Shown here piece by piece: positions 9,785 through 64,000 of a stretch of DNA of 64,000 bases. The notes beneath the pieces are model-generated. The model saw nothing but the letters and a program-made list of their open reading frames with translations. It had not been told where the DNA came from and ran no database searches. The DNA lies in the NCBI GenBank assembly GCA_965112735.1, contig OZ218953.1, positions 2,914,001 through 2,978,000 on the forward strand. The letters run 5' to 3'. A program made the translations under genes and the position numbers. This stretch comes from Phaeosaccion multiseriatum (lineage: Eukaryota > Protista > Ochrophyta, other classes). Position 1 is the stretch's first letter; each line of letters opens with the position of its first letter.

Positions 9785-11848
9785 TCACGAGGCCCGCGCG
9801 CCCATTGCCAGCACGGGCAGCGGTGTGCCTACTGCCTCCGCCTCCGCTCCACCTCCCTCTCCCTGCACGGGGGCCTCACTACTAGCGCGGCCGCGCAATC
9901 TCTTTCCCATCCGTTTCACCCATTTGTCAAGCCCGGCGAAATACGCTGGTACGACAGCCAAGACGCCCAAGACCAAATAGGCCAAATCGGTGGACGACCC
10001 CCCACCGCCATCGCTCGAGTCCCCAGGCGGTGCGCTACGGTCTACTGGCAACGGCGATTCACTCGGTGGAGGTGATGCCGCTGGCGTTGGCGTCACCGAA
10101 GGTGCTGGCGTTGGCGTCACCGAAGGTGCTGGCGACCGAGTCGAGGTGTGTCGTCATTGCGTGTCATGCACCCACCCCCGGCCATCGATACGTAGTACGA
10201 GTCAGACACGCAGAAGCAGAGGGAGGAGCGAGAGGAGAAGAGGAGGGGTGGAGTGGTCAGGACATGCGTGCGATGCGCATGGCTGAGGGTGCGAGTTGGC
10301 TTCGCAGCCCGACAGGAAGGAATGGCGGGGGGTGCGAAGGTATTGAACATTGCGCACTGCCTGGCCTCCCTTCGTAGTAAGACCCTTTGGTTGGGTCAAC
10401 AGTGTCGTGTTCCTCACCCTCACGTGTCGAGCAAGAGGACACATCCAGGTCTGCAAAGCATAATGTCCCCGTGTCGCCGCAGGCACTGGAGTCTTCCGAG
10501 GTGCAGTCGGGGTAGCAGTTCGTGTTAGCGTCCGAGAAGCTCGAGCCACATCGCGTGTTGGTAGTACCTTCACTCGCCGCGAAGAAGCAAAGCAGCAGAG
10601 AACGTGCGATACAGGCAGACCGTCAATAGAAGCAACGACGAAGGAAAGTAGAGCAGCAGTTAGGCTGCTCATCGACCGTCCCTCCCTTTGTAGTAAGACC
10701 CTTTGGTTGGGTCAACAGTGTCGTGTTCCTCACCCGAGCAAGAGGACACATCCAGGTCTGCAAAGCATAATGTCCCTGTGTCGCCGCAGGCACTGGAGTC
10801 TTCCGAGGTGCAGTCGGGGTAGCAGTTCGTGTTGGCGTCCGAGAAGCTCGAGCCACATCGCGTGTTGGTAGTACCTTCACTCGCCGCGAAGAAGCAAAGC
10901 AGCAGAGAACGTACGATACAGGCAGACCGTGAATAGAAGCAACGACGAAGGGAAGCAGAGCAGCAGTTAGCCAGGCGCAGAGTAGGTGGTGGGCAGCAAG
11001 TGCGGTGTACAGAAATGCAAGCGCCAATAAGCAATGGGCCGGGGGGGGGGGCAAACCAAGGGCAGACAAGACTGGGCCTGAAAAATAGACGGGGGTGGCA
11101 GGACCGAGCGAGCCGTGGCGGGGAGGGGATACAGTGTTCCTACCGAGTGAAAGCGCGGAAGGGGCTGGGGTTGGCTCAGTGGTAGGAGGAGCAGACGTCG
11201 GAGTTACACTCGGAGGTGCTGTTGGTGCAGTGGTAGGAGCAGGCAGGTCCGAGGGAGCACCTGAAGCGGTCGGAGTCGGGGCCACACTCGGGGGCGCAGT
11301 TGGCACTGGGCTATCACCGCCGCTGTTGCTGTTGCCCGTTGGAGTGGGGGTTGTCCCAGAGGTTGCCTCCGGTGTTGGAGCCGATGTCGGAATTGCGCTC
11401 CCACCATCGGGGAAAGTTAGGAAACTGTTATCGCTCACAGCGACTACCTCTCCCTGTTATACGTAGAGGCAATGAGCAAGGGAGGCAGCAGGAAGCAGCT
11501 CAACACACAGCAGCGGCAGCCAGAAGCCCCGTCACCGAGGAGAGGCGGCGGGCCCCGGGGCCGTGGTGGGCAAAGTTTGGCCCCTTTGATTGAGCAAGGT
11601 CAGGTATAACGACCAAGGCTTGGCTGGCTGGGGTCATGGCACTTACATCATCAGACTGAGCAGACCGCACGCAGCCCAAGAGCGCAAGTAACCGACGAGA
11701 GGACAGCACACGCACGATGAGAAAGAGTCAACCGGCCGTGAGAATGGCAGGCCAGAATGAGGAGTCGCAGGCGGGAAGGACGACCAGCAGGGCAAGGGCC
11801 AGCAGCAGGCCAGATCGCACGGCAGCCAGCCAGGCAGGCAGGCAGGCA

Positions 11849-11905
<57 letters not shown>

Positions 11906-12014
11906 ACAGACAGGCAGGCAGGCAGGCAGCCAGGCAGGCAGGCAGGCAGCCAGGCAGCCAGGCAGCCAGGCAGCCAGGCAGGCAGGCAGGCAGGCAGGCA
12001 GCCAGGCAGGCAGC

Positions 12015-12065
<51 letters not shown>

Positions 12066-12958
12066 ACAGACAGAGGTCAAGGCCGCGCCGGGGTTAAGCG
12101 TCCCTTGCTTCGTGCTCAATGCAGTCAGTCACACCCAGAGCAGAGTGAGCAGCGCTTCCATAAAGAGCCAGCACCGAAAGAGCTCAGTCACAGCCATGAC
12201 CAAACCTTCCGATCCCCTCACCCCCCAGGCAGCAAAGGTCAAGAGCGATCTGAAGGCGGCGCAATAGCAACACACTCACCTCTGCAAAATTTTCCGAGAA
12301 GATGACGTCCCCACCAGAGAAGCTGGCGGTACTATCGGCCAAGAGACTGATGGCCCCGCCCTGTAACGTGCAAGCATTGCAGCAGCTCGATCAATAACGC
12401 TTCCCCAAGCAAAAGTCTCACCATTTCTCAAAATGACTAGCAAGTCCAGCTTCGTCGATACAAGCTCGCTCGTGGGGGTCCAGACAGGCCAGACGAGAAG
12501 GCGCTTGAAAGAAGCTCAGAATGGCGGAGGGGCAGGGGTGCAGTCGGCAGGCAGGCAGCACTTCTTCCACCCATTTCAAAGACACTTCCGCCCAAGCAGG
12601 GAAAGATAGAGTCAGCCAGGCAGTGGTGATGCTAGCACGCTTCCCTCCGTTGGCTACAAGGGCCAAGGATCGGAGAGCCGCGGCACCACAGGCCAAGCTC
12701 GCTCTGGGCAAGGCTTGGCACAGTCAAATGACGACCAACTCTGCCTTGGGGTCATGGGACTTACATCAGTCTGGGCAGGCCGCACGCAGCCAGTCCAGAA
12801 ACCCAGGCACCGTGGGAGAAGACACCAAAGTACGGAGACACAGCCAAAGGGGTCAGAAAGGCAGATCAGAGGGCGGCGGCGGGAAGGACGAGCAGCAGGG
12901 CACAGGGCAGGTCACACACGGCAGGCAGGCAGGCAGGCAGGCAGGCAGGTAGGCAGGT

Positions 12959-13042
<84 letters not shown>

Positions 13043-16000
13043 GTCAAGGCCGCCGGGGGGGGTCAGCATGCTTCCTGGTCAAGGAGGTTGACAGCAACGC
13101 AAATCATGCGCCAAGCACGATAAACAGGGCTTCGAGCAAAAAGGCGGCCAGCCCGGTCAAACGCTCATGCGACTTCTTGTATTATCGACTCACCTGAGCA
13201 GAGTTTCCGATGAACGAGACGCCGCTCGCACCGGAGAAAGTGGCGCGACTTCCCATGGCTGCGGCCAGGGCCCCTCCCTGGCACGTAGAAGAAAGCAAGG
13301 AACACAGCAACAGCACCAGCAGCAGCTCAATCAGAGCTACCTACGCCTCCCCCTAGTCTCACTGAACGATGAGGACAAGCTTGCTTGATCCCAAGGAAGC
13401 AAAGACGAGATCACGCTTCCCTCGCTTCGCTACGCGGATCGGAGCTGGAGCCGCGGCAGCAGGCCCACAGAGGGCTCTGGGGAAAGCTCGACACAGTTGA
13501 CTGACAAGCGTCCCGACCAGCCAACTCCTGCCTTGTTGAGTTGAGTTGAGTTGAGTTGATGGCACTTACATCTCTCTGGGCAGACCGCACGGAGCCCAGT
13601 CGCCGTCGAGAAGCAAAGCCGCACAAATAGTATGACGAGATGCCAAAGGGGGGAGAAGGGCAGCAGGTCAGAGTGTGGCGGCGGAAGGACGAGAAGCAGG
13701 GCGCACGGCAGGTCACACACGGCAGGCAGCAGGCAGGGGGGAGGCCGATGCAGGGGTGCGCATCCCTTCCTACTGCAAGGCAGGTCGACAGCACCGCAAT
13801 CAAGCCCCGGCGCGAGCGGCCAAACGGGCAGGTATGCCCGCTGCCAGGCGCTACTAAGACGAAGCGAACGTCCCCTTCGGCCAAGGCTCAATACCACCGC
13901 TACCGTTACGACTCAAGGGACGTGAGCGCACAGGAGAGGGGCCGAGCTTCCGCCCACAGCCCCGAAAGTGCGACACAGTCGTGACAGTAACGTCCGATTC
14001 TCGCCCAAGGTCAAGAGCCATCAGAAGCGGTGGGCACGAAAGCTCATGCGACTTCATAAAATCGACTCACCTCAGCAGAGTTTCCTGAGAAAGTGACGCT
14101 CCCACCGGAGAAGGAGGTGGTGGCGCTACTGAGTAACTGCATGGCCCCGCCGCCCTGTCATACGGCAGAAGGAAAAACAGCAGCAGCCAGCTCAATCAGT
14201 ACACCTTCCCCTGTGTTCGATAAGGCCAAGCTTGGTCCCAGGAAAGCGAGAGCACCCTCCCGAGATTGTTCAGGATGGCTTGGCACAGTTGAGTGAGCCA
14301 GGCAGGGCACTAAGTCTTGTCTGCCTAGGGGTTATGGCACATACAAGCTGGGCACAGATCACCGCAGCCCAGGAGGCACCGTGGGAGAAAACACCACAAG
14401 TACAACGAGGCACAGCCAAAGGGGCGAGAAATGCAGGCCAGGTCAGGGTGCGGCGGCGGGAAGGACGAGAAGCAGGGGGCACGCACGAAGATGAAGCGAA
14501 CGTCCCCTCCAGCTCAAGGCTCAGTACCAGCCACCGCTACCGTTACGACTCCAGGAGGGACGTGAGCACACACGGATAGAAGCCAAGCTTTCCACAGCAC
14601 CGAAAGTGCGTCGTGACAGTAACGTCCGATTCACAAACGTCAAACAAGAGCCATCTGAAGGCAGCCCAAAAGCTCCCTACTATGACTCACCCCGGCAGAG
14701 TTTTCCGAGAATTCGACTTCCCCCCCCGAGAAGGTGGCGTTACTTGATCCCAGATGAACGGCTCCTCCCTCTCCCTGTCACGTAGAAGAAAGACAGGAAC
14801 ATTGCAGAAGCTCGACCAATTACCTTCCTCGCAGAGTCTCATTTCTCAGAACGGTTCAGCGCCATCATATTGGGCACAGGACAGACGAGTGAATGGTGCT
14901 AGAATGGGGGGGGTGGGTGGAGTCAGCAGCATTTCAATCCAGGTACCTGCACCCAAACCGGGAAAGGGAGGGTCAGTGAGGTCAGCACGCTTCCTTCGCT
15001 CAGCTACACGGATCGGAGCCGCGGCACTATAAAGGGCTCTCTCTGGGCAGGGCTTGGCACAGTTGACTGAGAGAGGGAACTCTTCCTTCCTAAGGGGTTA
15101 TGGCACTTACAGAAGTCTGGGCAGACCGCACGCAGCCCAATCACAGCGGAGAAAGCAGCACAAGTACGTCGAGAAGCAGAAGGGGTGAGATGGCAAGGCG
15201 GAGTGCGCCGGCAAGGCCGAGAAGCAGGGCACACGGCAGGTCACACGGCAGGCAGGGGCAGGCATATGTAAAAGGCCGCTCGCTACGGACTTGCATCCCT
15301 TCCCTACTGCAAGTCTCGGCAACAACGCAATCAAGCCCCGAGCGGTACGAATACGCTCCGATTTCTGAACGTCAAAGAGCCACATCTGAAGCGCTGCGCA
15401 CGAAAGCTCACGGGACTTCTTGCTATCGACTCACCCCTGCAGAGTTTAAAGAGAAAGAGACGTTCCCATCGGAGAAGCTGGCGCTGCTCAGTGACAAAGC
15501 CACGGCCCCGCCCTGTTCATGTGACAGAGAGACACAGCAGCAGCCAGAGCAATGAGTACGCCTTCCTCTTACCGGCCGTAGCCTCATTTGTAAAATGGCA
15601 AGTTAAACATCATCTGGCAAGCGCCAAGCGGCAAGCCCTTCCCCCCAGGAACGAGAGCCGGCTCCAAGATTGGCCAGGATGGGAAAGAGAGGTCAAGCAA
15701 CTGTGAGGTCGCCCTTCTTGGTCCACGGATCAGAGCCGCGGCGCCACAAAGCGCTCTGGGCAAGGCTTGGCACAGTTGACTGAGCCAGGGCACTAAGTCT
15801 TGTCTGCCTAGAGGGGGGTTATGGCACTTACATCTTCCTGGGCAGAGATCACCGCAGCCCAGCAGCCCAGGCACGCACCGTGGGAGAAAACACCACAAGT
15901 ACGACGAGGCACAGCCAAAGGGGCGAGCAAGGCAGGCCAGATCAGGGTGCGGCGGCGGGAAGGACGAAAAGCAGGGGGCACACGGCAGGTCACACGGCAG

Positions 16001-19000
16001 GCAGCAGGCAGAGGTAAGGCCGCGGCAGGGTTCTTCGTACTACTGCAAGTCAAGGTCGGAACAGCGCAATCGCGCCCCGAGCGGCCAAAGGTGCAGGCGG
16101 CACGAAGAAAGGAACGTCCGATTCTCAACAAGATCAAGAGCCATCTGAAGCGCTGCGCACGAAAACTCATGATACTTGTTGGTATCGACTCACCGTAGCA
16201 ACGTTTCGTGAGAATGTGACGCTCTCACCGGAGAAGGTGGGACCACCACTAGTATGCCCTGCATAGATTGCCCCCCCCTGTCATACGGCAGATGGAAAAA
16301 CAGCAGCAGCCAGCTCAATCAATACACCCCCCCCTGTGTTGCATTTCATGGCGCGATCGTAACCGTCATCGATAAGTGGGGCAAGCTTGGCCCCAGGAAA
16401 GGCGAGGGCGCCCTCCCGAGATTGTTCAGGTTGGCAGGGGGGGGGCGGGGTAGAGGCAGTCAGGAGGCAGCATCGCAATCATGATCCTTGGCCTCAGTGA
16501 AGAGGGTGGTCAGTATTGAGGCAAGCACGCTTCTCTCCCTGAGCGAGCTAGTAGCCTGCACCTATGGAGCCGCGGCACCACAAAGGGCGGGCGCTTGCTG
16601 TGGAAAGCTTGTCCCCAATTGACAGAGCAAAAGCACCTGTAGCCATAGCTAAACTTCCGATTGGGGTGATGGCACTTACACGCTGCCGCAGACCGTGTTC
16701 AACAGACCGCACGCAGCCGGAGCGAACCGCGGAAGTACGGGGCGAGAAGCCAAAGGGGCAGGAATGGCAGGTCAGAGGCGAGTGCGGTGACGGAAAGAAC
16801 GAGCAGCAGGGCACATGGCTTGTCACACGCCAGACAGGCAGGCAGACAGAGCAAGGCCGCGGAGGGGGTCAGCATTCCTTCCTCCTCACCCGAGCACTAT
16901 GAACAGCTCTTCCGCGGATTGGTCATCCCCAGAGCTTTGAATGGTCACAGCCACAACGGCGGCCAAAAGAGGCAGGCATTCAAAGCCAGCCCAAGTCAAG
17001 TCATATGCAAAGCCAAGCAAGGAACACATGTGGAGACACGCCAATATTTGCACATCACCGAGCGAGAGTGCACAACAGTCGTTCTCTCTCTCCTTCAACT
17101 TCGTGGTATCGACTCACCGTTGCAGAGTTTCCAATAAAGATGCTGCTCTCACCAGAGAAGGTGGCGGTACTCTCGTCAGCTAGAAAAACGGCCCCGCCCT
17201 GTCACATGGAGAAGAGGAAACACGACAATTAGGAGGAGGAGAAGCTATAAACCATCGATAAGGGCAACCTTGCCATTGTGGCAGGCCCTTCCTTGGTCCC
17301 AGGGAAAAAGATGGCACACTTCCCTCGCTTCGCTGGCTACACGGATCGGATAGGAGTACAGAGGGCCCTGGGCAAGGTTTGGCCCAGTTGATTGAGCAAG
17401 GGAAACGATTGACTCCTGGGCACTTACATTGACTTGCTGGACAGTCCACACCGCACGCAGCCCAGCCAGGCACCGTGGAGAGAGCAGCAGAGTAAGATGA
17501 AAGACGGCCAGGGCGGTGTGAGTGAGAGGTCATAGTGCGGCGGTGGCAAGTGCAAGGACGAGCGAGAGGCACGGCACAGGGCACGCCACACTGTACAGAG
17601 TCAGACAGGTCAAGGCGGCGGGGGGCAGTCCAGCATCCCCTTCGTACCCAAGGGGGGAACGCAATCTATCGCCGAGCACGATGGACAGCGCTTCCATGCG
17701 CATTGGCCATCCCCACAGCTTCCAATGGTCTCCGAAAGGTGGCGAAGGAAGGACATGCAGAGGGTTGTTGCCGAACCAACACCAACACCGTATCGTACCC
17801 GCTACGAGCCAAGGAGAACGTGCCTGCACATGGGAGGCGGCGGCCAAGCGTGCGTCGCACAGACACCAACGAAGTGGTCGACAATCGCGACACAATACTC
17901 CGATTCTCAACAGTCAACAGCGATCGGAAGAGAGCTCATGCAACTTCTTACTCACAGCAGCGTTTCCTGAGAACCGGACGTCGCCTGAGAATGCGATGCT
18001 GCTGTCCGCGATTACAGAGATGGCCCCGCCCTGTCATGATATGGTGGGAGCAAACAGAGCAGAAGGTCTGTCAAGTTAACCATCAGCCATGAATGGACAA
18101 TCTGCAAGTTGCTTGGGCCAGGAAAGACGAGAGCAGCCATGCTTCCCTCGCTGAACCATAGGAGCATTCATTACTTACACTCTGGGCAGACCGCACGCAG
18201 CCCCGTAGACGCCCCAGTCGCCGTGGAGAACGTGGCAAAGGTACGACGAGAGCCAAGCAAAGGAGAGCCAAAGGGGCGAAAAGGGAGGCCAGGTCAGAGG
18301 GCGGCGGCGGAAGGACGAGAAGCAGGACACATTGGGAAGCTCACATGGCCGGCAGGCATGCAGCCAAGCAGGCAGGGACGCAGACAGGCAGGCAGGAGGC
18401 AGAGGTCAGCTACGTCAAGGCCGCGGCAGGGGTGAGCACCCGCCCGCCCCCCTTCCTGCCTTAAGGTCAGCGGCAAGGCAATGCTCAGCGTGAACTCACC
18501 CCTGCCCGATTTCCGGAGAAGAGCACATCGCCGGAGACAGTCACTGAACCACCTTGGGATATGCCTATCGCTCCTCCCATCTGCCACGTTGGAATCGACC
18601 AATTGGACAAATCAGCAGGACAGAAAAGAGAAAAAGAGGCAGAGCAGCACCCGGCCGCACGATTCACCGCCACCCCCCCCCCCCCCCCACTTACGTTGAA
18701 CTCGTTGGTTGCAAAGTGCAGCGTGTGCCCACCGTCATTTTCGATAATGAGTTCTGCACCGTCTCCCTCTACGTAAAACCTTAACCTCTCTAGGGTGACG
18801 TTGGCGGTGACGGAGAGGCGGAGGGTGGTTCTTGACAGCACAGTCACGGTCGACTGCTCGTTGCAGGTCATAGATCCGCTCAAAAAGAAGGCCACGTCCA
18901 CACCATCGTCCACCACAGAGTCGCAAGAGAGCTCCTCCTGCGCCATCGCCCCACCCACGAGGAGCGCAATTGCCAGAGCCATCCATGTCAGGAAGGAAAG

Positions 19001-19009
19001 ACCCATCAT
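9785..19009 (-). CDS. Type-I membrane adhesin-like protein: signal peptide, nine Pmp-type (GGAI...FxxN) repeats, Pro/Thr-rich stalk, two Cys-rich modules, TM helix, short tail
   Basis: Exons in minus-strand order: 19009-18695 (MMGLSFLTWMALAIALLVGGAMAQ...), 18580-18500, 18030-17956, 17198-17118, 16277-16194, 15512-15435, 14774-14691, 14154-14071, 13277-13194, 12360-12280, 11453-11144, 10874-10734, 10567-10418/10424, 10128-9785, plus nine micro-exons. All are AG/GT bounded with compatible phases and no stops. TM segment: LAYLVLGVLAVVPAYFAGL. Confidence 0.85.
10365..10971 (-). repeat. Near-identical tandem duplication (~307-316 bp unit) of a phase-1/phase-1 exon encoding a six-Cys module, with its flanking intron
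   Basis: Copies at 10365-10665 and 10681-10971; both encode GTTNTRCGSSFSDANTNCYPDCTSEDSSACGDTGTLCFADLDVSSC. Confidence 0.92.
11647..11655 (-). other. Predicted 9-nt micro-exon 9 (TCTGATGAT, Ser-Asp-Asp)
   Basis: Minus strand reads gcggtctgctcAG|tctgatgat|GTaagtgccatgacccc. Confidence 0.8.
11821..12072. repeat. Imperfect (CAGG)n microsatellite, intronic
   Basis: Directly visible; a second (CAGG)n tract lies at 12921-13041 at the homologous position of the next unit. Confidence 0.95.
12765..12770 (-). other. Predicted 6-nt micro-exon 8 (ACTGAT, Thr-Asp)
   Basis: Minus strand reads gcggcctgcccAG|actgat|GTaagtcccatgacccc. Confidence 0.8.
13570..13575 (-). other. Predicted 6-nt micro-exon 7 (AGAGAT, Arg-Asp)
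   Basis: Minus strand reads gcggtctgcccAG|agagat|GTaagtgccat. Confidence 0.8.
14345..14347 (-). other. Predicted 3-nt micro-exon 6 (CTT, Leu)
   Basis: Minus strand reads atctgtgcccAG|ctt|GTatgtgccataacccc. Confidence 0.75.
15111..15116 (-). other. Predicted 6-nt micro-exon 5 (ACTTCT, Thr-Ser)
   Basis: Minus strand reads gcggtctgcccAG|acttct|GTaagtgccataacccc. Confidence 0.8.
15832..15837 (-). other. Predicted 6-nt micro-exon 4 (GAAGAT, Glu-Asp)
   Basis: Minus strand reads atctctgcccAG|gaagat|GTaagtgccataacccc. Confidence 0.8.
16680..16682 (-). other. Predicted 3-nt micro-exon 3 (CGT, Arg)
   Basis: Minus strand reads ggtctgcggcAG|cgt|GTaagtgccat. Confidence 0.75.
17428..17436 (-). other. 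Predicted 9-nt micro-exon 2 (CAAGTCAAT, Gln-Val-Asn)
   Basis: Minus strand reads ggactgtccAG|caagtcaat|GTaagtgcc; it follows the shortest (75 nt) repeat exon. Confidence 0.75.
18179..18181 (-). other. Predicted 3-nt micro-exon 1 (AGT, Ser)
   Basis: Minus strand reads gcggtctgcccAG|agt|GTaagt. Confidence 0.75.
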
Positions 19010-19189
19010 GTCAAAAGAAAGGAAAGACCCAAAAATCTCGTCAGTCATTAATTCCCCTTGAAGGGGAACTAAGGTCAAAATAAAAAATAAAAAGGAGAAG
19101 TCCAGTGCCCAGCCAGTGCTCAGTGTTTGGGTACTGGCTGTTCCTCGCTCGTCAAGTGAACCCGTCTTCCACAGGAAGGAGAGGGGAGA

Positions 19190-19292: not shown

Positions 19293-20396
19293 CTTTCATA
19301 TATCGGCCACACTCGAGTGGTGCAGCAGCTCCTCTCGTTAGGGGCAAAGGTAGCTAGACATACATACGGGGATGGCTGCAGGCAGGAGAAATCAAAGCGA
19401 CGGTAGAGGAACTGGTCTGTCTGAAGGGCAAAGCAAGCCTAGACGAGCCGTTGCCCGATGTGGGATGGACGGCAATGACTACGTATGGTCGAGCAGACGC
19501 CATCGACATTCTCGTCTCAGCCGGTGCGAGCACTGAGGAAGAGGATGAGCAGGGGCTCACTCCACTCTTGGCTGGTCGCATCGATGGATGGCATGCATCG
19601 ACAGTGCACAAGCTTCTGACGCAGCGGTAGTGGACCTGCTTCTCTCCGCCGGTGCCCGAGTGGACGTGACGAATGGCGCTGGTTGGACTCCTCTCCACAC
19701 CGCCGCTGGAAGAGGAGGTCTCGATGAAGTGGTGGGGCTACTCCTCCGAGCTGGTGCGGAGTTAGACTGTGGCGAGGGCAGCGATGCGTACACCCCACTT
19801 CACATTGCTGCGCACAGCCAAAGGGCACGGGGCAGTGGTGGCCCGTCTCCTCGCCGCAGCCTCGCCATGTGATGCCCCGGCCACGAGTGGCACCACCCCT
19901 CTGCTTGCGGCCATCATTGGAGGCTGTCCTGGGATCGCCTTGCAGCTTCTCTCGGCTGGAGCATCGGTGGACACTGCCCTGATTTGTCCACAACAGCAAC
20001 TTTGCTTAGGCCGCGAGGTCGGAGGGCGCCTCCTCGCCGCGGCAGCGGAGTTCTTCGCATCGCAGACTGATGTGGCTGGACCTCATGCGCGCCGCAGATG
20101 ACCCCGCTTTTGACACGCAGAGAGGGTACTGCGGTAGAGCGGTGTACAGCCCGAGACTGTGCTGGCGATGGCCTCGGAAATGGGCGGAGCAACCACTCGT
20201 CGTCCTGTTCCTTGCCAAGTGGGGTCGCTCCACACGAAGGTTGCGGAGTTGGTGGGCGTACGACGAGGACGGGCGACCGCTCTCTCCCCGCGCCATGACA
20301 TTGTTCGCCTCGCACTTGCGGAGAAGCACCACCCAGCTCAACGCTCTGTTGGTCTGTTGGAGGACGATTGGTCTGTGGGGGGGAGGGAGCGAGTGA
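19285..20396 (+). pseudogene. Intronless, frameshifted ankyrin-repeat gene remnant
   Basis: Ankyrin motifs fall in different frames: HLSYIGHTRVVQQLLSLGAKV; GWTAMTTYGRADAIDILVSAGA..GLTPL; GWTPLHTAAGRGGLDEVVGLLLRAGA..YTPLHIAA; KGHGAVVARLLAAA..GTTPLLAAIIGG. No convincing splice sites bridge the shifts. Confidence 0.7.
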
Positions 20397-60162: not shown

Positions 60163-63100
60163 TCATCGTGGCGCCCTCCTGCTTCGTCCCTTCTTCCCCT
60201 TCCCTCCACTGGAGGAGGAAGAGGATCCAGGGGGCGTGGTGAGCTTGTTGAAGGCGAAAAAGCCGAGCCCCAGGAAGAAGATGCCATTGAAAATGGGCAC
60301 CACCACCCCAATCGCAACCACCTTGGCGAACTGGCTGTACAAGGCAGACGCTACAATGGCCACCGCCAGCACCCCCCAGGGAAAAGGGGAGTTGTCGGTG
60401 AACGCGTCTCCATCCGCCGTAGCACCAATGCCTCTACTAGAGCTGTCGCCACCCCCCCCCTTCTTGGCTCGCTCCTCGCGCCGCTGCTCCCTCGCCTTTC
60501 TCTGACGGTGGCGGGACACTTGCGCCGCACAAGTGGTGATCTTCTGTAACCGCTGAAGAAGCTGCTGTGCCAAGTCAGGATGATCGCTCACAAAGGCGCC
60601 GTAGTCGGGCCGCAGCGCCACACGGCCCAGGTTGAGGCCGATGAAGGCCAGCGCATTGAGCTTGAGGCGAGGGGCCCTTACCATGTCGGCCACGGAAAGC
60701 ACCTCTAGACAGTTGTCCGTGTCCACATGCACCATGCTCTCGCACAGCCGTTTCATGTCCTCCAGCCGGTAGCGGTCGGCCGCAAGCAGGTCCTCGAGCA
60801 CGGCGGTCGTGGAGCCGCTTGATTGAGGGGTCAACGTGCCGCTGTACAGGTACAGCAGCAGCCGCAGCATCCCTACATGTGAGTCTGGAACCACCACCTC
60901 CACCACCCCTCCTCCTCCTCCTCGTCCCTCCTGCATCCCGCTGCGGAACATGGCTTGGAAGAACTCGCTCCTGGCGGAGAGGATGGCCTTGTGTGCGTAG
61001 ATGGGCCTGCCCCCGGCCACAAACTTGACGTCCGCATGCTGTCTGCTGCCCAACGCACCCCCCAGGTCCGCCGCCAGCGAAGGAGGGGGCACTCTCACGG
61101 CCTCGGCCAGGGCGACGGAGGCCGACGGGGGGGGAGGAGGAGGACGATGAGGGAAGACCCTCCTCCCCACCCCCCACCCCACCGCTATCGCTGTTGTGGG
61201 CCGTCGCAGAAGAAGAGAAGAAGGCAAAGTTGGGGTGCAGCACCGCGATGGAGGCGCGACAAATGGCGGCCAAGCGGGGCAGTTGGTAGTTCAGTGCTGC
61301 CTGCAACAGATCATAGGGTAGAGGGGTTTCCGCGTCGAGTGGAGCGGTCACATTGTCCGTGTAGATGTACTCCAGCAGCACCCGAGCCACCTCGTAGCGC
61401 ACCTCGGGCAGCAGCAGCTCCAGCAATTGCACACCGTCACCACCACCACCACCATCGGAGAGGGAAGACATGTCTCCTCCTCCGAAAGGCATGGGTCGCA
61501 CCTCCTCGTCGATGAGGTCCCGTAGCACCGGACTCCGGCAGGCCAGCACGATGCGATGCGCATAGAGGAAGCTCCCCGCCACGATTAGCACGCAGTCGAC
61601 ACTTTCTTCGAGCTCGACTTCCGGGCTGAGTAAAGCCACTCCGTCGTCGTCCGCCCGTCCATAGGGCGGGTCTTCGATACTCAGGGCTTTGCTGAGCAGT
61701 GGGCGGCCTAGTGCTTCTCCAATGTTGTCACCAGAGAGCACGAGGAAAGTGTGGTGGCCCCCGCAGCTCACGGCAGCGACGCGTTTGCCGGCGAGGTCGG
61801 GTAGCCAAGACGGACAGGGTTCGCGAGGCACGGGCTCCGGAGGGGCAACGAGAGCGAGTAGCTGTTACGGGGAAGGGGAGGGAGGAGGAGGAGGAGGAGG
61901 AGGAGGAGGAGGAGGAGGAGGAGGAGGAGGAGGAGGAGGAGGAGGAGGAGGAGGAGGAGGAGGAGGAGGAGGAGGAGGAGGAGGAGGAGGAGGAGGAGGA
62001 GGAGGAGGAGGAGGAGGAGGAGGAGGAGGAGGAGGAGGAGGAGGAGGAGGAGGAGGAGGAGGAGGAGGAGGAGGAGGAGGAGGAGGAGGAGGAGGAGGAG
62101 GAGGAGGAGGAGGAGGAGGAGGAGGAGGAGGAGGAGGAGGAGGAGGAGGAGGAGGAGGAGGAGGAGGAGGAGGAGGAGGAGGAGGAGGAGGGAGGGAGGA
62201 AGAGGTTGCGGAGCGGGGCGTGAAGGGTGGAAGCCTGGCTTGCTTAAGGCGACAGGGGCTGCGGCGCTTATTGCTGACTGTCATTGCGATGGTGCAGGCT
62301 ATCGCATTTCTCTCTCTACTTTACCTTGAGGGCGTTTTCCTGGGGGGCGCCAATGACGTCACCCTCCATGATCATCGACTTGATCGCCTTGCTCTGAGCA
62401 GAGCCTCTCCCCCTGTTGTTGCTGTTGCTGCCCGACTGGCCTCCCCCTCCTCCTCCTCCTCCTCCTCCTCCTCCTCCCTTCAATAGGTCGGGGTTGCCCC
62501 CCCATGTAACGGCTCCATCTCCAGTCACATACACCGTGCCGGCGGCGGAGAGGAAGACGGTGTGCTCCTCCCCGCAAGCCGCCCCCACCAGCGGCACAGA
62601 GGAGAGCGCGCTCACCTACAGGAAGGGATGGCAGTGGGTGGCACAGAACACACAAGATTTGTGGTGAGGTGGGTGGGTGCGTGCGTGAGCGGAGGTGTGC
62701 GTACTTTGCTTTTGACTTTTTTGCCTTGCCTTGCGCGGCGTTGCCCACCCCAGCGCCTGGGCTCGAATGGCCCTGACCTTCTCCAACTCGCGAGTCTGTC
62801 GTGCGTATCAAACAGGTGTCGGGACGGGGAGGGGGGGGGGGAGAGCAGAGGAGCGGGATTTAGGGATGGGAGGGGGGGGGGGGTTGGGTGGGGGAGGGAG
62901 CAGGAGAGAGAAAGGGCGGGGGAGAGATGGAGTGTGTGTGTGAGAGAGACAAGAGAGAGAGAAAAGGGGACAGACACACAGAGACAGAGAGAGAGAAAGG
63001 ACTTCAACCCTCCCCCCCCCCCCCAACTCCAACCCCAATTCCAACTCAAGTCTCTCCTGTGCTACTACACCCTCTCACCACCACCTGCCATGACCCGCCA

Positions 63101-64000
63101 CCCACCTTGGCCAGAGGCACGATGTTGAGGTCTATTTCGTGACCATCTTTCCCTCGACTCTTGCCCGCCAGTAGGCCCATAACACTGGCCTGTCTCTCCG
63201 CATCGCTACCAAACTTCTGCCCCGTCCGAATGCCCAGCTCCCCTTGACCGAGGCACGCGCTTCCCTCTCCGCCCCACGACCACGCCACTCCTTCCCCGTC
63301 CACCACCACTGAATGCCCTCCTCCGCACGCCACGTGTCGAGCCGCTGCCACACCATCATCACCGACATCACCTCCTCCTCCTCCTCCTCCTCCTCCTCCT
63401 CCTCCTCCTCCTCCTTCTCCGCCTCCCCCACCCGACGTCCCAGCCGTGGGGGCACGGGTGCCAGCCTTGCCCCCCCCACGGAAGGAGCTACTTCTCCTCC
63501 CCAGGAAGGGCTGTACAAGATTGGGCTCCCATGCGTCGCTAAGCAGCGTCGAACCCACAGCCGAGGGGTTGGCAGCAGCCGCCCCGTGAAACGTCCGGAT
63601 GGTACCCGATGCCGACGTGGCAGGGGCCACATAGCCCAGTTGACCCGAGCCGTTGTGGCCCCACGACCACACACGGCCAGAGCGCGTACGCACGAGGGAG
63701 TGGTACGTACCGCACGCGACCTGCACCACCCACTCATCGTCCGCCAGTACGTCAGCACTACCCGCCCCTCCTCCTTCGACGGCACCATTACTGCTGCTCC
63801 TCGTGGCTTTTCGTCCCCCTCCCCGCCCCCCTCCGGCTAGTGCGGCCGCGGCTCCTTGAATGTCGACCTGCCTGGGCACGAGCTGAAAGCGTGGCACCCG
63901 TTTCTTGCCCCCCGTGACCCTCTCTGCAGGCTTCCCAAGGCCCAATCGCCCACGCGCCCACGTACCCCAGCTGTACACCCTTCCGTCGTGGGTCACCGCC
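60163..64000 (-). CDS. RCC1-repeat plus tandem BTB/POZ protein with a C-terminal hydrophobic anchor; 5' part lies outside the window
   Basis: RCC1 motifs GRVYSWGTWARGRLGLG, VVQVACGTYHSLV..VWSWGHNGSGQLG, VACGGGHSVVV, VSCGGHHTF. BTB motifs DCVLIVAG..YAHRIVLACRSPVL and HADVKFVAGGRPIYAHKAILSARSEFFQAMF. Exons >64000-63106, 62614-62325, 61861-60163 (one extra C in the run 61127-61134). Confidence 0.85.
61877..62192. repeat. (GGA)n trinucleotide tract of about 100 units, intronic
   Basis: Directly visible, immediately upstream of the acceptor at 61862-61863 on the minus strand. Confidence 0.97.

Follow-up and report, generated by a model that had tools for sequence, protein, structure and literature searches.

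In brown algae, genes of the LRR-ROCO and NB-ARC-TPR types contain one-repeat-per-exon arrays; we know of no micro-exon described between their repeats. Plant micro-exons can be as short as 1 nt; their GTRAGT donors are conserved, signals in the flanking introns are needed, and misannotation is frequent (PMC8831610). The micro-exon genes (MEGs) of schistosomes diversify secreted proteins by splicing of small symmetrical exons (PMC4350168, citing DeMarco 2010). Some human exons have distant branch points; the AG that they use as acceptor is the first to follow a long AG-exclusion zone, and such zones and branch points are enriched among alternatively spliced exons (PMC1431707). Pmp-type repeats occur in chlamydiae and trichomonads (PMC6701047). 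Here we describe a gene in a 64,000-nt stretch of DNA (hereafter, the window) from the ochrophyte Phaeosaccion multiseriatum (contig OZ218953.1, positions 2,914,001 to 2,978,000 of the forward strand), in which nine exons, each encoding one Pmp-type repeat, alternate with nine candidate micro-exons of one to three codons. The latter are probably included in the mRNA and spliced in by default. In a search of the open-access literature, no gene was found described in which repeat exons and exons of 1–3 codons alternate regularly.

The gene occupies positions 19009–9785 of the window on the minus strand. Its 23-exon model has canonical GT-AG introns with consistent phases and a stop-free frame of 678 codons from ATG to stop (2037 coding nt), of which the candidate micro-exons contribute 51 nt. 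All nine repeat exons are 75–84 nt long, a multiple of three, and in phase 0, with GTGAGT donors and (A/C)CAG acceptors. Each of the nine introns that follow them contains exactly one CAG-n-GTA(A/T)GT site, with n = 3, 9, 3, 6, 6, 3, 6, 6, and 9 nt in order. These exon sizes and phases, the single site per intron and the values of n had been reported in a first-pass annotation of this DNA and were all reproduced by script, as was the spliced peptide derived there, which is correct. The same annotation placed the sites in a conserved context. The flank blocks are real, but their conservation was overstated, as four units deviate upstream and two downstream. With up to three mismatches allowed, the 20-nt upstream half of the flanking motif is found in five of nine units and the 17-nt downstream half in seven of nine, the expectations from shuffled sequence being 0.05 and 0.29, respectively.

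From 5′ to 3′ on the minus strand, repeat exon 1 (18500–18580; 81 nt, phase 0, matching TIGR01376 positions 2–13) is followed by candidate micro-exon 1 (18179–18181), AGT, which would encode Ser. Repeat exon 2 (17956–18030; 75 nt) is one codon short at its 3′ end, and the three codons of candidate micro-exon 2 (17428–17436; CAAGTCAAT, Gln-Val-Asn) make up for the missing one. Repeat exon 3 (17118–17198; 81 nt) precedes candidate micro-exon 3 (16680–16682; CGT, Arg). Repeat exon 4 (16194–16277; 84 nt), which matches TIGR01376 positions 16–22 at its start, is paired with candidate micro-exon 4 (15832–15837; GAAGAT, Glu-Asp), and repeat exon 5 (15435–15512; 78 nt) with candidate micro-exon 5 (15111–15116; ACTTCT, Thr-Ser). 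Repeat exon 6 (14691–14774; 84 nt) has Gly-Glu ahead of GGA at its start and is followed by candidate micro-exon 6 (14345–14347; CTT, Leu), whose donor is GTATGT. The array continues with repeat exon 7 (14071–14154; 84 nt) and candidate micro-exon 7 (13570–13575; AGAGAT, Arg-Asp), then repeat exon 8 (13194–13277; 84 nt) and candidate micro-exon 8 (12765–12770; ACTGAT, Thr-Asp), and ends with repeat exon 9 (12280–12360; 81 nt) and candidate micro-exon 9 (11647–11655; TCTGATGAT, Ser-Asp-Asp).

Inclusion would split each intron between repeats, 469–840 nt when undivided, into a part of 318–624 nt before the micro-exon and one of 148–404 nt after it. Short introns are normal in this gene, since intron 1 measures only 114 nt. 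The frequency of CAG-N(1-12)-GTAAGT in the gene is far above chance: there are eight occurrences here vs. five in the remaining window, both strands taken together (about 120 kb). At nine sites, a canonical acceptor and donor enclose 3–9 nt within an intron of a coding gene, which is in the size range of micro-exons (≤15 nt), and every sequence-level sign of used 3′ and 5′ splice sites and of a frame constraint is present. The simplest reading, and one we consider likely, is that a unit of two exons, the second of only one to three codons, was duplicated in tandem. As a separate possibility, a longer exon formed by read-through of the donor was ruled out by stop codons within about 8–10 codons.

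The candidate micro-exons resemble those of plants and animals (≤15 nt) in their length of a few nucleotides, canonical AG and GTRAGT sites, conserved flanking signals, probable stepwise removal of introns, and in being missed by annotation (PMC8831610). The known plant and animal cases, however, occur singly or in pairs in conserved housekeeping or neuronal genes, whereas the nine candidates here take regular turns with the repeat exons of a single tandem array, have hypervariable sequence, and are predicted to be included from the DNA. In the brown-algal LRR-ROCO and NB-ARC-TPR genes, too, a separate symmetric exon encodes each structural repeat, and duplication links the introns to one another. 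No other Pmp-type exons were found elsewhere in the window. A metagenome scan with a free spacer of 1–12 nt gave seven matches, all due to chance and without similarity in the flanks.

All nine insert lengths are multiples of three, and none of the inserts contains a stop codon. Neighbor-joining trees of the upstream flanks, the downstream flanks, or both each require at least five changes of insert length. In pairwise alignments of the flanking introns, one-base gaps are the commonest, and multiples of three make up 19% of internal gaps upstream and 15% downstream. The chance of five changes all being multiples of three is hence about 0.18^5 = 2e-4, and for the absolute minimum of two changes it is about 0.03. 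In the closest pair, units 4 and 6, the flanks are 82–86% identical and the inserts are wholly different (GAAGAT vs. CTT). The frame is kept and the length is under coding constraint, as expected of a micro-exon. These observations bear on an alternative in which the repeat exons are joined directly and the sites stay out of the mRNA as conserved parts of the intron, such as a splicing enhancer, a decoy pseudo-exon, or what is left of an ancestral exon end. Such an element leaves unexplained why the five or more length changes were all multiples of three when indels in the flanks are mostly of 1–2 nt.

Conservation around the sites was measured as mean pairwise identity among the nine units. 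It amounts to 67% between positions −180 and −61 relative to the micro-exon; the final 25 nt ahead of it reach 69% (median 76%), and the first 20 nt after it 69% (median 75%). For comparison, the value is 30% for the micro-exon itself and 49% for third positions of identical four-fold-type codons, and the median for the repeat exons is 63%. The conserved stretch is not limited to the splice sites and extends over about 180 nt upstream and 100 nt downstream. Flanks better kept than synonymous sites around a hypervariable center are what would be given by splicing signals on both sides of a freely varying loop codon, and the micro-exon residues would be free to vary because they fall in the loop between rungs. 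For a conserved intron element, the position of its most variable part right at the center has no explanation. A dispersed repeat was ruled out as the source of the flank blocks within the window, where they match only the nine units. The introns gave no Rfam matches to a structured RNA or small nucleolar RNA, and a small hairpin just before the acceptor (−3.6 kcal/mol) showed no convincing covariation.

Each candidate micro-exon is preceded by a long tract free of AG. On the minus strand, the tracts span 18184–18339 (156 nt, A-poor), 17439–17590 (152 nt), 16685–16818 (134 nt), 15840–16032 (193 nt), 15119–15278 (160 nt), 14350–14506 (157 nt), 13578–13765 (188 nt), 12773–13070 (298 nt), and 11658–12103 (446 nt) for micro-exons 1 to 9, respectively. 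AG-free runs in the introns between repeats have a median of 7.5 nt and a 90th percentile of 44 nt, vs. 134–446 nt before the micro-exon acceptors. Pyrimidines account for 68% of the tracts and A for about 6%; a G follows none of the 85 A's in them, compared with 257 of 768 (33%) elsewhere in the introns. Of 4491 AG-free runs on the strand of the gene, only 38 reach 120 nt. Since the tract is AG-free, the first AG after it would be the acceptor. A G-rich stretch lies between the pyrimidine tract and the acceptor AG. In seven units, a CTGAC/CTGAT-like motif that holds one of the few conserved A's is located 73–113 nt upstream of the acceptor and is a plausible candidate for a distant branch point. 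Ahead of micro-exons 8 and 9, the tracts contain long (CCTG)n / (CCTGCCTG)n microsatellites (12920–13070 and 11830–12070, minus strand); they extend these tracts to their 298 and 446 nt without adding an AG.

An AG-exclusion zone of at least 100 nt, as in human exons with distant branch points, is thus present in all nine units. The human cases likewise have 100–400 nt without AG between branch point and acceptor and use the first downstream AG (PMC1431707). They differ in that the human exons are of ordinary size and scattered over many genes, whereas here the arrangement recurs nine-fold before exons of 1–3 codons, with a branch point that is predicted only. Several long AG-free runs in the window end at other plausible acceptors (for example, minus strand 10882, 10131, 49528, and 53001), including those of two later exons of the same gene, and most of the long runs in the window are C/T-rich and A-poor. 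Long AG-exclusion zones may be a general feature of introns in this genome.

The protein encoded by the repeat exons was compared with two independent family profiles. All nine exons contain the GGA(I/L/V) and FxxN motifs of Pmp-type repeats (Chlam_PMP, PF02415; POMP_repeat, TIGR01376). The first-pass annotation had called the repeats Pmp-type, with the inserts at the linker between NxA and GGA; matches to both profiles across and within exons bear out the first point, and the second agrees exactly in position with the family consensus. Against TIGR01376, single exons match below the threshold but in the register expected: a repeat exon ends on position 13 of the profile and the first Gly of GGA in the next exon falls on position 16, so that two positions stay empty, which is the commonest micro-exon length. 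With the inserts, the successive NxA-to-GGA linkers have 2, 3, 2, 3, 5, 3, 3, and 3 residues; without them, 1, 0, 1, 1, 3, 2, 1, and 1. In five of the nine inserts, the last codon, directly before GGA, encodes Asp or Asn.

The 19 positions of the Chlam_PMP profile run from FxxNxA to GGA across the junction. Peptides of 22–23 amino acids (aa) from the translated window were scored for six junctions with and without the insert. Inclusion raised the score from 20.2 to 24.0 bits at junction 1, from no match to 20.8 bits at junction 2, from 13.6 to 20.5 bits at junction 4, and from 17.4 to 23.3 bits at junction 8. Four of the six junctions thus reach 20.5–24.0 bits, the cut-off of the profile being 20.6, and the peptides with inserts align to it without gaps or with fewer of them. 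The conserved-element alternative does not explain why two to three positions would be empty in both family profiles, nor the linker of zero residues that direct joining leaves at junction 2.

The alternation of GGA(I/L/V) and FxxN with a period of about 28 residues is shared with chlamydial Pmps and trichomonad Pmp-like proteins. Both are surface proteins, and the latter are eukaryotic membrane proteins (PMC6701047). Chlamydial Pmps, in contrast, are autotransporters encoded by intronless bacterial genes, whereas the product predicted here has a single membrane span, a Pro/Thr stalk and Cys-rich domains encoded by 23 exons. Its gene has spliceosomal introns, and no autotransporter beta-barrel family, the C-terminal part that goes with outer-membrane export in chlamydiae, was found at its C-terminus.

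Several observations weigh against the inclusion of the micro-exons. At junction 5, the score is 17.1 bits with the insert vs. 19.8 without it, and at junction 6, 16.0 vs. 16.3, so that the overall outcome is four junctions better, one neutral, and one worse; at junction 5, the next exon already has two extra residues. The last base is T in all nine candidate micro-exons and G in eight of nine repeat exons. A T is not the base usually found before a donor, nor does this gene favor it at third codon positions (C:T = 2:1), and the invariant terminal T has found no explanation. Direct joining of the repeat exons also preserves the frame, giving a product of 662 aa, and for this reason the open frame does not discriminate between the two outcomes. 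The nine units share one ancestor by duplication and are not nine independent trials. AG-free runs of at least 120 nt number 58 in the window on both strands, so long C/T-rich runs are fairly common; the idea that long AG-free runs mark real acceptors in this genome fits, but their frequency lowers the uniqueness of the tracts. To our knowledge, three-nucleotide exons are rare in every organism studied. Finally, the six sequencing runs that match the locus come from one sample and study, and the four compared over 13150–19100 are genomic DNA: their contigs are collinear with the window, one spans the whole interval, and none has a joint at exon borders.

Some of these points are what conserved intron elements outside the mRNA would predict. 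Direct joining keeps the frame, the undivided introns would be of ordinary size, two junctions score equally well or better without an insert, and the invariant T before the donor suggests a constraint on the element and not on a codon. Given the length rule, the variable center and the gaps in both profiles, we nevertheless regard this alternative as unlikely.

A further possibility is that the sites serve recursive splicing, in which the intron is removed in two steps and nothing is left in the mRNA. An AG with GTAAGT shortly after it does resemble a ratchet point, and exons this small would in any case be expected to need introns removed in steps (PMC6224609, PMC8831610). A ratchet point, however, requires the GT to abut the acceptor AG, and here 3–9 nt lie between them, with none of the nine inserts beginning with GT. 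The insert would be retained, because the sole donor usable after the acceptor lies beyond it, and recursive splicing without retention is excluded by this anatomy. Moreover, stepwise removal has no evident benefit in introns as short as 469–840 nt, and the multiple-of-three rule would again go unexplained. Overall, we consider this alternative very improbable.

We propose that the gene arose by tandem duplication of a unit of two exons. Exon A (75–84 nt) would encode one beta-helix repeat of the Pmp type, starting with GGA and ending with NxA(x), and exon B (3–9 nt) the last 1–3 residues of the turn before the next GGA. A distant branch point at the conserved CTGAC/CTGAT, about 75–115 nt upstream, would be followed by the long A-poor, AG-free tract; the first AG past it would act as acceptor, and a consensus GTAAGT one to three codons further on as donor. 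Since an exon of this size cannot be bound at both ends simultaneously, the two flanking introns are probably removed one after the other, with the conserved intron stretches on either side as guides. By default, the micro-exons are most likely included.

Default inclusion contrasts with the reading of the first-pass annotation, in which the micro-exons, and perhaps the repeat exons too, are regulated cassettes whose skipping or inclusion would yield many surface isoforms. All 18 exons are in phase 0 and have lengths divisible by three, so that any combination stays in frame; this symmetry, however, is automatic in a repeat protein built by duplication. The link of AG-exclusion zones to alternative splicing in humans (PMC1431707) is a weak hint in the same direction. 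The G-rich element between pyrimidine tract and AG also fits, such elements being linked to alternative exons (PMC6339879). On the other hand, donors and acceptors as strong and as close to consensus as these would suit constitutive splicing at least equally well. Most plant micro-exons are constitutive or undergo intron retention instead of skipping (PMC8831610), and a beta-helix with whole rungs skipped may not fold. The principle of regulated cassettes is used by schistosome MEGs, which encode secreted or surface proteins with very small symmetrical exons that permit splice variants differing by a few residues (PMC4350168). The MEGs differ in that micro-exons form most of their coding region and that they are apparently restricted to flatworms, whereas here very small exons make up a minor part of the coding sequence of a folded repeat protein. 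Judged from the DNA, regulated cassettes are quite unlikely. The more far-reaching version, in which independently regulated cassettes would give combinatorial beta-helix surfaces differing in one corner loop per rung, with the family possibly expanded in the genome, and thus a splicing-based system of surface diversity in a free-living protist or alga, appears distinctly doubtful.

Outside the array, the predicted protein consists, in order, of a signal-peptide-like N-terminus, an N-terminal domain, the nine repeats, a Pro/Thr stalk, two Cys-rich domains, a second Pro/Thr segment, one hydrophobic span, and a short basic tail. By this layout the 678-aa product would be a type I membrane or surface protein; the adhesin role proposed in the first-pass annotation is a guess. 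Exon 1 (18695–19009, minus strand) is open throughout and carries the start codon, the signal-peptide-like N-terminus, the N-terminal domain, and a GTAAGT donor. Intron 1 opens, right behind this donor, with about 19 G's in a row (18672–18690, minus strand), and the contigs of three DNA runs differ there by one base in length. The N-terminal domain matched no family, and an exhaustive phmmer search with exon 1 against 1.8 billion representatives returned only chance matches to unrelated repeat proteins. Downstream of the array on the minus strand, a 310-nt exon (11144–11453) encodes a degenerate tenth repeat and the Pro/Thr-rich stalk and ends in phase 1. Two exons of phase 1-1 then encode the Cys-rich domains, copy 1 at 10734–10874 (141 nt) and copy 2, its near-identical tandem duplicate, at 10424–10567 (144 nt). 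The tandem duplication (10424–10874) takes in the 141/144-nt exon together with its intron, and the duplicated exon encodes a six-Cys domain (RCGSSFSDANTNCYPDC...CFADLDVSSC), for which there was no Pfam family match and no useful Atlas match. The last exon (9785–10128, minus strand) contains the Pro/Thr-rich segment, a hydrophobic stretch resembling a membrane span, the basic tail, and the stop codon.

This integrity bears on the remaining alternative, an unexpressed or decaying gene copy that inherited the pattern from a functional ancestor or paralogue. It would agree with the lack of a homologue or a transcript-derived protein in the protein libraries, where look-ups with exon 1, a neighboring BTB reading frame, and an exact look-up of one reading frame of the window found no protein of P. 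multiseriatum or a close relative. It would also agree with the intron-block matches in small parts of other contigs from this genome, which suggest paralogues. However, the 2037-nt frame runs unbroken through all 23 exons, no splice site departs from the canonical form, and both the signal peptide and the membrane span are present, making decay extremely improbable.

The contigs in question, 0.6–2.4 kb in length and from the DNA runs, share only 20–29-nt pieces of the conserved intron blocks with the window and then diverge. The matched pieces lie at 13680–13700, 15242–15262, 15854–15878, 16831–16850, 16904–16932, 18111–18132, and 18368–18395. These partial matches suggest that paralogous arrays may be present elsewhere in the genome.

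The window itself has a G+C content of about 57–67% and is eukaryotic nuclear DNA. Immediately upstream of the gene and in the opposite orientation lies a sequence coding for ankyrin repeats (19300–20300, plus strand). Further away, a gene at 60575–63996 on the minus strand combines RCC1 repeats with a BTB domain; its BTB frame had no relative in a word-based protein search, and the lineage therefore appears poorly represented in databases.

If confirmed by transcripts, the micro-exons of this gene would be among the shortest exons known, arranged in a regular array and in three cases only a single codon long. A long AG-free tract and a presumed distant branch point would go with each of them, and the array would thus offer a natural nine-fold replicate for the question of how the spliceosome recognizes an exon too small for binding at both ends. 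For repeat proteins of this kind, standard gene prediction would silently shorten every rung, and this would go unseen because the frame stays open when the micro-exons are skipped, a point that bears on the annotation of this genome.

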